In this document: positions 21,628 to 53,989 of the stretch, in pieces
How positions within the stretch are numbered: position 1 is the first letter of the stretch
Layout: the number at the start of each line of letters is the position of its first letter
From: Trichosphaerium sp. ATCC 40318
Taxonomy: Eukaryota > Protista > Tubulinea
Length of the DNA: 64,000 nt
Assembly (NCBI GenBank): GCA_038496445.1
Contig: JALMLS010000150.1
Location: forward strand, 1-64,000
Direction: 5' to 3'
The notes under the pieces: generated by a model
What the model was told of the DNA's origin: nothing
The model's input: the letters and a program-made list of their open reading frames with translations, nothing else
Database searches by the model: none
Made by a program: the position numbers and the translations under genes

Positions 21628-22973
21628 TCATTCTTGACCTTGTTTTGGTTTCATGGAGGGAAGTGATGAATGTCTCTTTCCACTGTTACGACATCTTTGA
21701 AGACAGAAATCAAGATGAGCGTTACATACATGAGGTGGATTGAACTCACTACAGTCTGATTGGGCAATATGACAGTTGACTGCACATGAGAACTGTTCTG
21801 ATGATTCGATGTTTCGTTTTCCTCCATTTCTACATCTTTGAAGACATAAATCAACTTGAGTGTTACATACATGAGGTGGATTGAATTCACGACAATCTCC
21901 TTGAGCGATGTAGCAGTTAACGGGACATGAGAACTGCTCTGTCGACTCAGTCTGTGATAAAAAGGTGAGTACGAGGAACGAAGAGATGACATCTAAGTAG
22001 TGGTTGTTGGTAAACGGCTTATTTAACCGGCTTAGTCATTTGGGTGTTACGAAAAAAATAAATGACTTAATTGACTTAAATCGTTTCCGTTCTAATTACC
22101 AATTTCAATGGCTGAACCACCAAGTAGCGGAACCAAAAAATGTCTACGAACAAGAACTGCTGATGTTTTTGTTTATGGACGATGATAGACTCGCCTGATA
22201 AGGTTTCTTGTGCCTATTGTCAAGCACCATTCAGTCGCAACTCCAGCACTGATACACTTCGCAAGCATTTACAAGTTTGTAAATTGTGCTTAAACGATGG
22301 AACAAAAGCCCAGCTGAAACAACTATCGCTTAACTCAATGGGATTCAAAGCAAACCCTACGCTATTGCATGAAGATCAAGTGCGCTTAGACAATTTGTTA
22401 CTGAGATGGGTTCTACGAAGATCAAAACCATGGCAAGTAACATGTTGCTTCCGAACTCGGATTCTTTTTTTTTTTTCGAAAACTTTTATTTTCTTTTTTT
22501 CTTAGATTGCCAAAGAACTGAAGCAATACAGACGGATGCCTGCACTTGCCCTAAACCAGTGTCCATTAACATGGTGGCGTGGCAACCGTTCTTACTTTCT
22601 CCTTTCAGCTTTGGCTAGAGTGTACTTAGGAATGCCAGCAAGTTCCGCAACAGTTGAGAGAGTATTTTCTCGTGGTTCTATTGTGATGACAAGCAAACTA
22701 CTAGTCTGAGTACAAAATCTCTAGAACTGCAAGTTTGTGCTGCAGTTAATGCTAAGTACTTAGACTACATAAACTACAAATAAATTTCCAAACACGTGTT
22801 TTATTGTAACAATTTGGAGCCGGTTAGCCAGTTAAATAGAGTTGTTTTTGTTTGAAAAGTCATTTAGAGCTGAGCCGTTAACTTTCAACCACTACATCTA
22901 AGTTAAAACGTACAAGACATAGAATCATGGAAAGAGATGCAATGATGACAATGAAAGTAGAAAACAGATACAT
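21628..22973 (-). CDS. Secreted Cys-rich peptide precursor, 2-core copy; intron expanded by a hAT insertion
   Basis: Exon 1 22973-22914 (MYLFSTFIVIIASLSMILCL). Exon 2 21951-21628 is open and encodes two six-Cys cores ending RNGGKR and RNSGKR. Near-identical to 50975-51561. Confidence 0.8.
21998..22894 (+). mobile_element. Non-autonomous (internally deleted) hAT DNA transposon, 897 bp
   Basis: 8-bp TSD CATCTAAG (21990-21997 and 22895-22902). TIRs TAGTGGTTG/CAACCACTA extend imperfectly to about 22 bp. Remnants of a BED zinc finger (VSCAYCQAPFSRNSSTDTLRKHL) and of the hAT dimerisation domain (LARVYLGMPASSATVERVFS). Confidence 0.93.
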
Positions 22974-23132: not shown

Positions 23133-23360
23133 TCCTGTAAACTGCTACATCGCTCAATCAGATTGTCGTGAATTCAATCCACCTCATGTATGTAACGCTC
23201 ACCTCGATTTCTGTCTTCAAAGATGCCGTAACAGTGGAAAGAGACATTCATCACTACCCTCCATGAAACCAAAACAAGGTCAAGAATGACTTTGTACTTT
23301 GTAGGCACTCATTTGCCTCCCCTTTCACACTTCAAATAAAAAAGCAACTTTATTGCATCT
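23133..23360 (+). pseudogene. 5'-truncated copy of the Cys-rich peptide precursor (last core plus 3' UTR only)
   Basis: Encodes PVNCYIAQSDCREFNPPHVCNAHLDFCLQRCRNSGKRHSSLPSMKPKQGQE* and matches 52461-52680. No signal exon. Confidence 0.88.
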
Positions 23361-34108: not shown

Positions 34109-35029
34109 TTATTTCATAATCTCCAGCCAATGGTTATTGTCTTTTTCTGTCAGATAAATTTTATGAACCCCTGTTAACGCTTTGATGCCTTTGTCTGTCA
34201 CTTCAGTATAAAAAAGATTAATTGTATGAACTCCAACCAATGCTTCGATACCTTTGTCTGTTACTCTAGTACTGCTGAGACAAATTGTATGAACTCCAGC
34301 CAACGCTTTGATGCCTTTGTCTGTCACTTTAGTACAACCAAGATCAATTGTATGAACTCCAGCCAGTGCTTTGATGCCTTTATCTGTCACATCAGTATAG
34401 TTGAGATTAATTGTATGAACTCCAGCCAATGCTTTGATGCCTTTATCTGTCACTTGAGTATAGGTGAGATTAATTGTATGAACTCCAGCCAATGCTTTGA
34501 TGCCTTTATCTGTCACTCGAGTACAACTAAGATCAATTTTATGAACTCCAGCCAATGCTTTGATGCCTTTATCAGTTACACTAGCAGTACCACTGAGATT
34601 AATTGTATGAACTCCAGCCAACGCTTTGATGCCTTTATTTGTCACTTGAGTATAGGTGAGATTAATTGTATGTACTCCAGCAAGTGCTTTGATAAAGCTT
34701 TCACTCACGTTCTTATAAATACTATGAACAGAAAAAGCTTGTTGAATGTATGTTTTAAAGTCATACCCTGTCATCTCATAATAAATATCAACTTGGCATG
34801 TGTTTAAATGAAAAGGAAACTGTTGTTGATGATAATCTTTGAGCTGTTTCTTGTTTTCGATTGTAATGACTATCTTGGGTGTGTAACCCAAATAATCTTT
34901 TACTATACACGAAAATACAGAACATACTACCCTCATGTAGGGTAAGTACACGCCAGGAATAAAATTAAGGATAACAGCCCATATTTCGGTCGGTATTTGA
35001 TCAATTATCCCAGTAGTGCGTGTTTCCAT
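34109..35029 (-). CDS. Intronless F-box plus 21-aa leucine-rich-repeat protein
   Basis: N-terminal IDQIPTEIWAVILNFI..MRVVCSVF (F-box), then about 8.5 tandem GIKALAGVHTINLxxTxVTDK units (63-nt period). Confidence 0.9.
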   Translation of the reverse strand: METRTTGIIDQIPTEIWAVILNFIPGVYLPYMRVVCSVFSCIVKDYLGYTPKIVITIENKKQLKDYHQQQFPFHLNTCQVDIYYEMTGYDFKTYIQQAFSVHSIYKNVSESFIKALAGVHTINLTYTQVTNKGIKALAGVHTINLSGTASVTDKGIKALAGVHKIDLSCTRVTDKGIKALAGVHTINLTYTQVTDKGIKALAGVHTINLNYTDVTDKGIKALAGVHTIDLGCTKVTDKGIKALAGVHTICLSSTRVTDKGIEALVGVHTINLFYTEVTDKGIKALTGVHKIYLTEKDNNHWLEIMK

Positions 35030-37843: not shown

Positions 37844-38888
37844 TTAATTAAGTGGTAGCTTAGATTCAAGTTCGTTATCCTTCATTATCCATCTTTTTTT
37901 AAGTCGACCACTGGGATACCAAACCTCATATAACCCTTGTTTCAAACCATCCTTGAACTGAGTCTTAATCTCCATAAAACCGTTCTTATGCCAAGCCTCA
38001 TACAATCCTTCTTTTTTTCCATCTTTGAAAAAACATCTCATCTCAAGAGTACCATTGTCATACCACAGCCTATGTATACCTTTTTTCTTACCCTTTATAT
38101 AAAAACTCTTAACTTCAAGTTGACCATTATCATACCATGCTCTATATGTACCATCTTTAACTCCATTATTCATGATACAGTTCATTTCGATTTTACCATT
38201 TTCATGATAAGTTTCATAAAATCCATGTTTGTTACCATTTTTGAATGAGCATTCAGTTCTCTTTTGTCCGGTGTTATACCAGCTTGAATAACTACCTTCT
38301 TTAATACCTTTTCTGAATAAACAAAGTACTTCCAGTTGACCATTCTCATGCCATTGTCTGTGAATGCCTTCCTTTTCAAAATTTACACGATTGAATGACA
38401 CTTCTATTTTTCCGTTCTGCCAAAAAGCGTTGTAACTACCGTCTCTTTTTCCGTTTACTTTGTGCATCTTTGCTTCAATTTTACCGTCTTTATAGTAAGT
38501 ATTATAGTATCCATTCTCAACACCATCTTTCATCATCTTTTCACACTTGAGGATACCTGATAAATTCCATCTTCTTGAAATGCCATTAAGTACACCATTG
38601 ACGAAATGACATTGTGTTTTTTTGTTTCCGTTTTTGTACCACGTGTACCAGTTGCCTTGTTTTTCCAAATTTACATTAAAGTGTGTCAATATTGCTGCTT
38701 CTTTACAGAGACAATGCCTACAGAAACAAGCTTTAGTAAACACAGTAATTGCAAGGAAAAAAAAAAAAAAAACACAAATTATACCAGTTGTTAAATATTG
38801 TTAGGTCATGCATAGACGCTATATATTGCTGAATTTCGGGAGGTAGAGTGATAAGCGATGCTTTTGATGTGTTTTGAGACAGAAACAT
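37844..38888 (-). CDS. F-box-like plus MORN-variant (YwqK-like) repeat protein
   Basis: LITLPPEIQQYIA..WHCLCK after removing intron 38718-38784, then about 11 repeats of the type NGxKxGxYxxWYxNGQL. Confidence 0.85.
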
Positions 38889-49155: not shown

Positions 49156-50491
49156 ATGACAAGGCTACTGTATTGCTTTATTCTTTGCTTCTCTTCAATA
49201 TTATTACTTCGTAATTGCGAAGCTAGTAAGCCGTGGGTTCATACATGGGATACACTATCAGATATGTTCTATATGCATGGTAATAACCGGAGCGGTGAGT
49301 TAACAGATGCTGAAGTAAAGTTTATGGCATCAAGCTTTAAAATAATCACGTTTGGAAATTGCTTTGGATCTATCGAATACGGCACCACAGATGAAGAAGC
49401 AGTGTTAAAAGCTGCTACTGAAATAAAAGTAAATAATCACGTGTAAAGTGAAAAGGTTAACGAATTTTTCAGGCGGTTAATCCGGATGTAAAAGTAATTT
49501 TCTACTTCAAGTCAAATTTTGCCGAACAAATAGTAAAGTGTTCTACCACTTCTAAAACGTGGTTACAGAATCAAGATAAATGGTCTCTTCGTGATGATAA
49601 GGGTAACATAATTCACCACAACAGTACGCTATACAACGCAATAATACTAGTACACTCACCGCATCACTAGGCTGGCCAATGTTTGACCCAACTAAAAAAG
49701 ATTTTGTTGACTTTTGGGTTGGTCACTTAGTGGACATTGCCAAACAACGTCTCAGTAATGGAAAGGTATTAATCGATGGTTTTTTCCTCGATGGTATACC
49801 AAACTCTGATACCGAAATACGTAACCTCACAAAAGCCGAAAATGACGCTCACGACAAAGCGCAAGCGGCGATGATAGGAAAATTGCAAGCTGCACTAGAC
49901 GGGTTTGGGGAGAATCAAAAAGCTATAATGAACGCTCTAGACAGTGATTACGGATTAAAGCTTCATGTAGAAGGCGCTGCAGCGTCAATGGTTGACCACT
50001 TTGCTATTATTCAGTTTCTTGATCATAAAACTGGAAAAATGATTCCTGAAGCAATGCAACACCTTTTATTCGAAGTAATAGGTTCTCCAGAAAACAAAAA
50101 TCGTACTCTCGAGATAAAAAGTTGGCCAGGACCACTTATTAGTCCCAAGACTTGGCCTAACAATACTATCCCTAAAACGACAACAGGATTACGACAGATG
50201 ATGACTGACGAGTTTAATAACGCGTTATCTTACTTTTTACTCATTGCAGAGGAGAACCACTGGTGGGGATACTCCCTCTTCTGGGGAATCTCGGATTACA
50301 TCCCGTTTGGACCAGATCATACTTGTCCAGAGAACTTCTATCCTCACTTACATTGTAAACTTGGTGCTCCAAAAGGTCCAGCAAAACGTGTTTCAAACAC
50401 GTGGGTTTACACTAGGGAGTTTGAATATGCAAGCGTTTATGTTGACTTATCAAACAGAGCTGTATCCAAAGTAACTTGGCATGACTGTTAG
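49156..50491 (+). CDS. Secreted putative glycoside hydrolase (GHL15-like TIM barrel)
   Basis: Signal peptide, IKAVNPDVKVIFY, FDPT..FVDFWV, IDGFFLDG, and C-terminal KLGAPKGPA..WVYTREFEYASVYVDL typical of GHL15-like proteins. Two introns. Confidence 0.7.
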
Positions 50492-50974
50492 ATCTCAATA
50501 AAGACAAACCATCTTCCTTCAGTTTTAGATTTTGTTCCTTGTTACCACAAGACAATAACAACGTTAGAAGTTACTTGCAATGCAATTATTAAATACAAGT
50601 ATTGAGACTGAGGAGCACATTGAAGAGGCAAATGTTGAGGTAAAAAGTAGTGGCTTATCACTAAGATCATTATTCAACACATTTGTTTTTCCCTTCCACA
50701 TATTTCGTAATATTTTATATGGCTTGTTCAGGTACTTCACAAACAGATTTTGTTCTCAAGTTCATAGGTATGGAAAAGAATAAAAGTCATCACGCCAAAA
50801 AAGTAAAGAAAAGTGTGCGTGTTAGGTAGTAAATAAATAGAAAAGACAAAACCTCCTCTTGTTGGCGTCACTGTATCCTTGACTTTTTGATAATTGAGAC
50901 TTTAATTCATAAGATTGTGTTTTTTTTTTTCAAGTGCGAAGGGGAAGGCAAATGAGTACTTACAAAGTACAAAG

Positions 50975-51561
50975 TCATTGACCTTGTTTTGGTTTCATGG
51001 AGGGAAGTGATGAATGTCTCTTTCCACTGTTACGACATCTTTGAAGACAGAAATCAAGATGAGCGTTACATACATGAGGTGGATTGAACTCGCGACAATC
51101 TGATTGAGCGATGTAACAGTTTACAGGACATGAGAACTGTTCTGTTGATTCACTACTTTGGACACTTCGTTTTACACCATTACGACATCTTCGGAGACAA
51201 AAGTTGGCTTCGGCGTTACACACATGAGGTGGATTGAACTCACTACAATCTGATTGGGCAATATGACAGTTGACTGTACATGAGAATTGTTCTGATGATT
51301 CAATGTTTCGTTTTCCTCCATTTCTACATCTTTGAAGACATAAATCAACTTGAGTGTTACATACATGAGGCGGATTGAATTCACGACAATCTCCTTGAGC
51401 GATGTAACAGTTAACGGGGCATGAGAACTGCTCTGTCGACTCAGTCTGTGATAACAAAGTGAGCACGAGGAACAAAGAGATGACATCTAAGTAAAACGTA
51501 CAAGACATAGAATCATGGAAAGAGATGCAATGATGACAATGAAAGTAGAAAACAGATGCAT
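50975..51561 (-). CDS. Secreted Cys-rich peptide precursor, 3-core copy A
   Basis: Exon 1 51561-51502 (MHLFSTFIVIIASLSMILCL), 56-nt GT-AG intron, exon 2 51445-50975 with three six-Cys cores ending GGKR, GVKR and SGKR. Confidence 0.9.
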
Positions 51562-51713
51562 TGATGTTGTTGCTGTGGTTGCTAGTTGTTGTTGATAAAA
51601 TTTGATTGGTGGTGAAGATTTGAGTGGAAAACCAAGCTCGTCAAAAAACTAAGCAAATCGTCAATCATTGCGTCACTTTTGTGAATAAAGTGTCACCAAG
51701 CAAGTCATGAGTA

Positions 51714-51762
51714 AAAACCTTCAAGCATCAACCAAGTACATTGGTTGATGCTTGAAGGTTTT
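51714..51762. repeat. Perfect 22-bp inverted repeat with 5-nt loop
   Basis: AAAACCTTCAAGCATCAACCAA-gtaca-TTGGTTGATGCTTGAAGGTTTT. Confidence 0.95.
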
Positions 51763-52027
51763 ATAACTCCACAACAAATATTTATTTTAGAAGCAAAACT
51801 AACAATCTATTATCAACGGAACTGACGCATTTTCCATTGTATGACTTCATTGAATCAAATATGTCGTGATTTTTTTTTCAGTGTACCACGTGAAATTTTG
51901 TTTTTGTTCACATGAATCTAAACGGTACAAAAATATTCCGATGTTGACGAGATTTTATTTTGGTAAAGACTGAATCAATCAAATTGCCTCAACAACAATA
52001 ACCACAACAACATCAACAACAACATCA

Positions 52028-52617
52028 ATGCATCTGTTTTCTACTTTCATTGTCATCATTGCATCTCTTTCCATGATTCTATGTCTTGTACGTTTTTTGC
52101 TTAGCTGTCATCTCTTTGTTCCTTTTACTTACTTTTATCACAGACTGAGTCGACAGAGCAGTTCTCATGCCCCGTTAACTGTTACATCGCTCAAGGAGAT
52201 TGTCGTGAATTCAATCCGCCTCATGTATGTAACACTCAAGTTGATTTATGTCTTCAAAGATGTAGAAATGGAGGAAAACGAAACATCGAATCATCAGAAC
52301 AATTCTCATGTACAGTCAACTGTCATATTGCCCAATCAGATTGTAGTGAGTTCAATCCACCTCACATGTGTAACGCCGAAGCCAACTTTTGTCTCCGAAG
52401 ATGTCGTAATGGTGTAAAACGAAGTGTCCAAAGTAGTGAATCAACAGAACAGTTCTTATGTCCTGTAAACTGCTACATCGCTCAATCAGATTGTCGTGAA
52501 TTCAATCCACCTCATGTATGTAACGCTCATCTTGATTTCTGTCTTCAAAGATGTCGTAACAGTGGAAAGAGACATTCATCACCTCCTGATATGAAACCAA
52601 AACAAGGTCAAGAATGA
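52028..52617 (+). CDS. Secreted Cys-rich peptide precursor, 3-core copy B (inverted duplicate of copy A)
   Basis: Exon 1 52028-52087, intron 52088-52143, exon 2 52144-52617. Near-identical to copy A. Confidence 0.9.
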
Positions 52618-52921
52618 CTTTGTAATTTGTAGGCACTCATTTACCTTTCCATTCACCTAATAAAAAATGCACTTTTATTTTGCATTTTGTGTCGGTAATG
52701 TTGGTATAAAACAGAAACAACACGTCCATACGAGGAAATAATTAAGCACGTGTGAAAGAGCTTACATGAGAGTGCTTTAAAAGGAAGACTGCGGCGGTTA
52801 AGCATAGAAGGGCAAATGTGACAACAAAAACCGAAGTTGACTTTTTTTTTCCCATTTAACCAACTGTACCTTGAAGTCGCCCTACAAGCCACGTTATTAT
52901 GGCAGGTTTCCATAATAAAGA

Positions 52922-53287
52922 ATGGTCTACTGTTCAGGGACTATACGAACGTCAAAGTGGGGACCTCATACCCTTCAAACACCCCAGAGGCGCTAAAAAG
53001 TGAGTTATTTGCAAAATTACATTATAATTATAAACTAAGCTCAATTAAATCATAGAATGGTATGGCGAGCTTGGAACTACTTTACTCCGGTATTTTGGGT
53101 GTTTTTGATATACTATGGCTACAACAAAGTGCAATACTTTAGATACTGGTATAAAACGACGTATCCTCCAGAATTGACGTCAGAGGAGCTTTTAGACGCG
53201 GAATTACGACGTCTTAGAGAATCTACAAGGCCTTTATCGGGTTTAGAGCGCACATTATCTCAAGAGAGTCATGAGGCGTACTATTAA
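52922..53287 (+). CDS. Small single-pass membrane protein (possibly mitochondrial)
   Basis: MVYCSGTIRTSK can splice to MVWRAWNYFTPVFWVFLIYYGY..ELRRLRES. One hydrophobic helix, no recognised family. Confidence 0.5.
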
Positions 53288-53989
53288 CGACCTAGCATCT
53301 GAAAAAGGGAAACAATAACTGTGGCTGGATTTTTTTTGCCCTGGCATTGTCATTTTATCATTGCGCTCCGGCCACAAACACAACAGTACGAGAGTTAGCC
53401 CTAAGCTCCCTCAAATTGCATTTTAACAAAGATTGTATGTCACATTGAACATTTAAATAAAATAAATGATACGCAAAGTGTAACTGGCAAGAACATGAAC
53501 ACCAAGTACAAAAAACAAGAAGATGAAATGATTGTGACATCTCCTGATTTTGTTTTTTTATTTGACACGACTTCAGATCACTAGCGTCGTTAGTTTGGGT
53601 TAGAATTACTTTGCTAATGTATAACAGCTAACGTAAAACATCTACACTCATTTCACGCAAGTTGCGTTGATACGAAAGTACGGATTGCTTTGTCGGCAAA
53701 CAAACGATTGATTGTTACTCACGACGTGTGCACAGAGCGACTCACACAACCCAAGTGTCTCCCTTTCCTTAAAACAATCAAACAAAGTTTCCATGCGCCA
53801 CAGCATAAACAACTACCTCTTGCATCTTTTGACACAATTTCGTGACTGGTGCAAATCAATGACGACTGAAGTACTATTTAAGTAAGCAAATGACGATATT
53901 TAGCGATAATCAATTGTTTTGTACCAAGTGGCAACTGCTCTTCACTGTAGTATTAGAAACAAACAAATAAATAGAAATTGGCTCTCAAT

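Follow-up and report, generated by a model that had tools for sequence, protein, structure and literature searches.

Positions 50975–52617 of contig JALMLS010000150.1 of the amoeba Trichosphaerium sp. ATCC 40318 (assembly GCA_038496445.1) hold a head-to-head pair of small genes, gene A on the minus strand and gene B on the plus strand, whose products look like secreted polyproteins with three tandem six-cysteine cores. The window analyzed here comprises the first 64,000 nucleotides of this contig (forward strand), for which a preliminary description, made from the letters of the sequence, had proposed a family of neuropeptide/toxin-style precursors. The locus raises the question of whether these are genuine genes, whether their products are cut into separate peptides, and what such peptides might do. 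We find a transcribed family under selective constraint, and lean toward the reading that it comprises lineage-restricted secretory prepropeptides, which would be cut at Lys-Arg (KR) into three six-cysteine peptides acting as stable extracellular ligands or inhibitors.

Architecture, expression, and constraint of the gene family

The two copies are 93–94% identical over ~680 bp, and both genes lie where the preliminary description had placed them (Table 1). Each gene has two exons separated by a 56-nt GT..AG intron: the first, of 60 nt, codes for a 20-residue leader, and the second, in this order, for a short acidic propeptide, three 38-residue modules, and a 14-residue tail after the last KR. 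The spliced protein has 177 residues and the proprotein 157. The leader, on an exon of its own, is hydrophobic: after Met-His come 18 strongly hydrophobic residues (mean Kyte-Doolittle hydropathy of 2.56 across residues 3–20).

The three-core layout with its 3-6-8-6-3 cysteine spacing, likewise read from the sequence beforehand, is exact in every module, all three modules per gene having the framework C-x3-C-x6-C-x8-C-x6-C-x3-C. The linkers are made up of G/V-K-R and an acidic Ser/Glu spacer ending in Glu-Gln, the boundaries that the earlier reading had described: modules 1, 2, and 3 end in GGKR, GVKR, and SGKR, and the spacers preceding them are TESTE-Q, NIESSE-Q, and SVQSSESTE-Q, respectively. 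The KR is strictly conserved, following 14/14 modules of the family, and the Gln behind the acidic spacer is the first residue of every core. Every copy of core 1 and core 3 has a Gly before its KR; for core 2 this holds in two of the four intact genes. An alignment of the 10 non-identical modules has 23 invariant columns out of 38, inclusive of the six cysteines and E17-F18-N19-P20-P21-H22; the invariance previously ascribed to the cysteines and an EFNPPHV loop thus extends as far as the His, with position 23 being V, M, or I. The variable columns are concentrated at module positions 26–30, in the second half, and each module type has a helix-2 signature that is kept across genes (T/A-Q-V-D-L, A-E-A-N/D-F, and A-H-L-D-F). 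Since each module type thus remains recognizable from gene to gene, the three-module layout is older than the gene duplications, with all three peptides being individually maintained. Each module has an isoelectric point (pI) of ~6.8, a net charge of ~0, and 6–7 charged residues.

Transcript evidence comes from the contigs of one public run (X1), which can be recognized as RNA-derived because a GT..AG-spliced joint is present in a neighboring gene (52999/53056). These contigs cover 52144–52487 without differences, with the match beginning exactly at 52144 and four unmatched letters lying 5′ of this start. Their depth is zero in the intron bin 52017–52117 and in all three intergenic stretches, namely 50603–50905, 51613–51915, and 52623–52824. 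Transcripts, on whose existence the preliminary description had made the family depend, are thus found over the exons and not over the intron or the spacers. Further, a 255-nt loose end of an X1 contig matches the 3′ untranslated region of the ~81-kb paralog, indicating that at least two paralogs are transcribed. Among the four intact genes the ratio of nonsynonymous to synonymous substitution rates (dN/dS) is 0.10–0.17, with dS reaching up to 0.31, and between the modules of one gene dN is 0.10–0.17 versus a dS of 0.5–2.5; the splice sites are conserved across copies. The 14-fold recurrence of the 38-residue pattern with low dN is far beyond chance, and the family consists of genuine, transcribed genes.

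A predicted helical hairpin with ladder disulfides

The cysteines stand at positions 4, 8, 15, 24, 31, and 35 of the 38-residue module and are mirror images about residue 19.5. The mirror pairs C4/C35, C8/C31, A11/(V,A,L)28, C15/C24, and F18/P21 each sum to 39, and an apolar spacing of 3–4 is seen on both halves (4-8-11-15-18 and 21-24-28-31-35). An antiparallel helical hairpin with three ladder disulfides would need just this mirrored spacing, which supports such a fold; the module is hence likely to be a helical hairpin with the pairing C1–C6, C2–C5, and C3–C4. AlphaFold2 placed helices at module residues 12–17 and ~22–36 in both of its runs, with low confidence (predicted local distance difference test, pLDDT, of 52 and 39).

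Processing enzymes and the question of amidation

Kexin/furin-type convertases are encoded at three loci (C36, C188, and C27), as indicated by matches to the Pfam Peptidase_S8, P_proprotein, and S8 pro-domain models, and the exon translations of all three show S8B-type motifs around the catalytic residues. Their predicted pro-domains end in HH[ST]KR. Kexins activate themselves by cutting at KR, such that a pro-domain ending in KR is expected, and we infer that the ends seen here would fit autoactivation of this kind. M14 and S10 carboxypeptidases are abundant in the genome, and Glu_cyclase_2, the plant/bacterial-type glutaminyl cyclase, is matched at four loci. Kexin, carboxypeptidases, and glutaminyl cyclase, which the preliminary description had suggested looking for, are therefore all present, making KR cleavage, the removal of the basic residues, and the cyclization of Gln enzymatically possible; processing at KR can be considered plausible from the encoded repertoire.

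The Gly before KR had also been taken as a sign that two of the peptides are amidated, a proposal that the genome does not bear out. PF01082 and PF03712 (copper type II ascorbate-dependent monooxygenases) match ~17 loci; DOMON domains lie upstream in 4/4 of the loci inspected, and a DOMON scan gave matches upstream of at least 12 of the ~17. No NHL/PAL repeats were found beside any of these ~17 loci, the only common contig, C17, having both 23 kb apart on opposite strands. A layout with DOMON upstream is that of DBH/MOXD1 and not of PHM. PAM was not found in the genome, with five of the ~17 monooxygenase loci unresolved (on C86, C39, C103, C189, and C320, at its second and third sites) and a stand-alone PHM thereby not strictly excluded, and a review of PAM distribution reports amoebae without this enzyme (PMC6529398). 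Amidation is thus unsupported; rather than amides, the peptides most likely carry a Gly extension or a free acid at their C-termini. More generally, before amidation is read into a Gly-Lys-Arg grammar in a protist, the genome should be checked for the enzyme.

The DOMON + copper monooxygenase genes are themselves part of a large expansion of ~17 loci, seen on contigs C12, C46, C102, C3, C17, C57, C155, C191, C205, C320, C332, and C386. The gene on C46, to judge by eye from exon translations, seemingly has additional copies of DOMON and a segment that spans the membrane several times.

Homology searches and comparison with known precursors

The preliminary description did not recognize the family, and our searches of Pfam, PDB, protein, and metagenome data agree in giving it no relative. 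Pfam has no family for the 157-residue proprotein; among 5.8 billion proteins, a word-indexed search found nothing, whether queried with the proprotein or with a single 47-residue module; and phmmer against 1.84 billion representatives recovered no homolog, its two hits (a bacterial-type tandem-repeat protein and an unrelated repeat protein) being rejected as repeat-on-repeat artifacts. A sequence profile search of PDB gave no match with E up to 10, and a search of the ESM Atlas by features gave no usable one. Two metagenome-contig matches were likewise rejected, as they reflect a chance DCREFNPP at the N-terminus of a gene on bacterial-looking contigs of 53% GC; by eye, that gene reads as diaminopimelate epimerase-like. 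A 38-residue module is too short to attain significance at low identity, and distant kin may accordingly exist. By these searches, the family appears to be a lineage-restricted orphan without detectable relatives, built on a known principle.

That principle is recognizable in several unrelated precursors. The plant α-hairpinins derive from modular precursors (e.g., Tk-AMP-X and Sm-AMP-X), with four-cysteine (C-x3-C-xn-C-x3-C) or six-cysteine (C-x3-C-x3-C-x(4-20)-C-x3-C-x3-C) modules (PMC11591084). The amoeba proteins resemble them in combining a signal peptide (here predicted), a cassette of short Cys-rich modules, and a short C-terminal tail; in the outer twin C-x3-C pair, which in the plant peptides pins two antiparallel helices; and in having paralogs that differ in module number, with six-cysteine variants occurring in plants too. 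However, the inner spacing is x6 rather than the x3 of the plant six-cysteine forms, with an 8-residue loop; the host is an amoeba; no sequence similarity is detected; and the sites that delimit the modules are KR, of the convertase type. Excision of the plant modules is attributed to other proteases.

The recently described Hairpin Loop Peptides (HLPs), which occur in fungi and hemipteran insects, are single-domain proteins of ~65 residues in the mature form, 58–75% hydrophobic, with 0–2 charged residues and a 15-residue loop (PMC13357843). The likeness to these lies in the predicted secretion, the six mirror-symmetric cysteines, the predicted helix-loop-helix with three ladder disulfides, and the weakly acidic to neutral pI. 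In contrast, the amoeba modules are 38 residues long, polar, with 6–7 charged residues, and are present three to a precursor with KR between them; the 1.84-billion-protein search gave no sequence match.

Yeast α-factor, the fungal KEPs, and metazoan/cnidarian multi-copy neuropeptide precursors have, like the amoeba proteins, a leader, acidic spacers, and tandem cores that are each closed by a dibasic site; in both cases a gene holds several near-identical cores, several genes exist, and a convertase and carboxypeptidase are encoded. Yet their cores are mostly short, linear, and Cys-free, and there is no homology; unlike the case of many animal neuropeptide precursors, the amidation machinery centered on PAM was not found in the amoeba genome. 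The naegleriapores are antimicrobial peptides of an amoeboid protist that arise from multipeptide precursors, and are saposin-like and about twice the size of the present module. They too represent several disulfide-rich secreted peptides from one precursor in an amoeboid protist, as is predicted here, but the Cys pattern is different and the amoeba family has no Pfam saposin match. The small Tim proteins with twin CX3C motifs, which reside in the intermembrane space and have no signal peptide, were considered as candidates and rejected, given the lack of a Pfam Tim10/DDP match and the hydrophobic N-terminal leader on its own exon. The family fails a defining feature of α-hairpinins, HLPs, and kexin-cut precursors alike, and the label "neuropeptide/toxin-style" fits it in architecture only.

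Proposed maturation, function, and alternative explanations

We propose that the 20-residue leader would take the chain into the endoplasmic reticulum and that each 38-residue module would oxidize on its own. Late in the secretory pathway the chain would then be cut after each Lys-Arg by a convertase of the kexin/furin type, and a carboxypeptidase would strip the two basic residues, yielding from each precursor three related, individually conserved peptides of ~4.3–5 kDa, which would most likely end as Gly-extended forms or free acids. Possibly, the acidic spacer is also trimmed to the Gln, which might then be cyclized. The folded module is envisaged as an antiparallel helix-loop-helix, stapled by the ladder disulfides, that would show the E-F-N-P-P-H loop and the variable helix-2 patch on its surface. 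The combination of an uncharged peptide with purifying selection favors stable extracellular ligands or inhibitors that would be presented by the invariant loop and act on a conserved target (a cell-cell, encystment, or mating signal, or a protease or channel blocker), and makes a membrane-lytic cationic antimicrobial or an arms-race toxin less likely. The amplification of genes and modules points to a need for quantity.

Several observations weigh against this proposal. The spacers do not significantly exceed the cores in variability (7/43 versus 10/114 variable columns; Fisher p=0.25), and, being about as conserved, they would allow the chain to function as one piece. No homologs were found in which the KR sites could be compared across species. 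Neither AlphaFold2 model, the first of one module with a 10-row alignment (pLDDT 52) and the second of the whole proprotein (pLDDT 39), is usable, and module residues 1–11 are non-helical in the prediction; a Foldseek search of PDB with the low-confidence model gave no match. The leader is judged a probable signal peptide by its hydrophobicity only, cleavage is deduced from genes and not from peptides, and the function is a matter of pure reasoning.

The conservation of linkers and spacers alongside that of the cores would be equally natural in an uncleaved secreted, surface, or cyst-wall protein with three tandem six-cysteine domains, where KR would simply be conserved linker residues; many secreted repeat proteins have linkers that are basic. 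We nevertheless hold this to be unlikely, because KR recurs at the same place after 14/14 modules, even the last, beyond which there is only the 14-residue tail, because the genome encodes kexin-type convertases with pro-domains that themselves terminate in KR, and because changes in module number arise here, as they do in other polypeptide precursors, through unequal recombination in frame. A possible though doubtful explanation is that the peptides are defense or attack molecules made in bulk, i.e., antimicrobials or toxins directed at prey or competitors. This would explain the amplification, with five or six gene copies of two or three modules each suggesting selection for dosage, and it is in line with the stability of disulfide-stapled peptides outside the cell and with the closest architectural analogs, the α-hairpinins and HLPs, being regarded as antimicrobial (PMC11591084, PMC13357843). 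However, a net charge of ~0 is unlike that of cationic membrane-active antimicrobial peptides, the selection is purifying and not diversifying, and the Pfam, protein, PDB, and ESM Atlas searches gave no similarity to a known toxin or antimicrobial family.

A full neuropeptide-like maturation, with pyroglutamate N-termini and Gly-directed amidation of two of the three peptides, would make sense of the Gly found before KR (in all copies of cores 1 and 3, and in core 2 of 2/4 intact genes) and of the Gln with which every core begins behind its acidic spacer, and both glutaminyl cyclase homologs and PHM-fold copper monooxygenases are encoded. Against this, we know of no enzyme that removes acidic spacers. 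Moreover, the monooxygenases are accompanied by DOMON (4/4 inspected, and upstream of at least 12 of the ~17 loci) with no NHL/PAL in range, and amoebae are reported to be without PAM (PMC6529398), which together leave such a maturation very unlikely. Finally, the dispersed degenerate 3′-end fragments, three in number and situated inside a repeated element on other contigs, together with the one truncated and the one transposon-carrying copy in the window, could be taken to mean that the region holds no functional family, its open frames being fortuitous and the copies those of some repeated or mobile sequence in decay. The four intact copies at a dN/dS of 0.10–0.17, their conserved splice sites, and transcripts over exons only render this extremely improbable.

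Within the favored reading of KR-cut secretory prepropeptides, we tentatively raise a more specific possibility, to which we would not give great weight: a triple-stapled α-hairpin might have arisen independently in this amoeba lineage, which would mass-produce it by convertase cleavage of polyproteins and use it as a diffusible signal between cells (a quorum, mating, or encystment factor). If true, an amoeba would be signaling with disulfide-rich peptides that are genetically encoded, a kind of which we found no description, with three ligand isoforms per gene. Secreted genetically encoded peptides are poorly charted in amoebae, and this symmetric three-disulfide family offers a concrete synthesizable target for the interactions of an amoeba with its neighbors, a further, independent instance of a solution, the modular hairpin precursor, that is known from plants and fungi, and a compact, probably very stable scaffold.

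Paralogs, recombination, and mobile elements

In the 70-Mb assembly the family is confined to one contig, with 14 full modules in three inverted gene pairs at ~22, 52, and 80 kb. Four genes are intact with three modules, two of them in the window and two 15–17 kb beyond it on the same contig. The "four copies in the window" of the preliminary description are all members of the family, but just two are intact; one has two modules and carries a transposon, and one is a truncated fragment (Table 1). A profile search of the organism's own genome gave no divergent paralogs beyond the known copies and three degenerate fragments. A large segmental duplication was rejected as the origin of the ~29-kb spacing of the three pairs, since only the ~1.7-kb pair unit is repeated and not the intervening DNA. 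Mid-way in the upstream region common to the divergent genes there is a perfect palindrome of ~50 nt (51715–51765), which is probably the junction of an inverted duplication.

Table 1. Coordinates of the gene pair, its paralogs in the window, and associated elements
Feature	Positions	Strand	Remarks and evidence
Gene B exon 1: start codon and 20-residue hydrophobic leader (probable signal peptide)	52028–52087	+	Sequence, hydropathy
Gene B intron, 56 nt, GTACG..ACAG, phase 0	52088–52143	+	RNA-contig match starts at 52144
Gene B exon 2: propeptide, three modules, C-terminal tail, TGA (52615–52617)	52144–52617	+	RNA contigs
Gene B core 1, 38 aa (Q..G)	52159–52272	+	Followed by GKR, 52273–52281
Gene B core 2, 38 aa	52300–52413	+	Followed by VKR, 52414–52422
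Gene B core 3, 38 aa	52450–52563	+	Followed by GKR, 52564–52572, and 14-residue tail
Gene A exon 1: leader same as that of gene B	51502–51561	-	RNA-contig depth 14.4 in bin 51512–51612
Gene A intron, 56 nt, GT..AG	51446–51501	-	Read on minus strand
Gene A exon 2 with TGA	50975–51445	-	Cores 51317–51430, 51176–51289, 51026–51139
Common divergent upstream region of the gene pair	51562–52027		Inverted-repeat arms reach 51608 and 51976
Two-module paralog	21628–22973	-	Exon 1 22914–22973, 962-nt intron, exon 2 21628–21951
hAT transposon, non-autonomous, internally deleted, 897 bp, inside the intron of the two-module paralog	21998–22894		Remnant hAT dimerization domain (Pfam Dimer_Tnp_hAT, E = 9e-10)
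Truncated paralog fragment: one module without Cys1, leader exon, promoter; partner of the two-module paralog	23134–23289	+	Probably a pseudogene

The second module of the two-module paralog is a hybrid with the front of module 2 and the back of module 3, brought together by an in-frame 50-codon deletion, and is a product of in-frame unequal recombination. The hAT element in its intron has the terminal inverted repeats TAGTGGTTG and is flanked by an 8-bp target duplication, CATCTAAG, at 21990–21997 and 22895–22902; a BED-like zinc-finger remnant can be discerned in it by eye. The three degenerate fragments on other contigs (C362:9843–9956, C208:94828–94941, and C455:8935–9048) are near-identical 3′ ends located in a dispersed repeat; they hold the last half-module, with KR changed to KG, and look like the capture of a gene fragment by a mobile element.

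Neighboring genes in the window

Transcribed genes lie on both sides of the gene pair. The one upstream codes for a putative glycosyl hydrolase of the GHL15 family (49679–50510; Pfam E = 3e-11), and the one downstream, at 52858–53300, is a spliced gene whose 56-nt GT..AG intron (53000–53055) is seen in the RNA contigs. Elsewhere in the window, two long intron-free open reading frames, at 34109–35029 and 37844–38743, code for repeat proteins, the first of the LRR_6 type, with about nine repeats of 21 residues that are nearly identical, and the second of the MORN_2 type.

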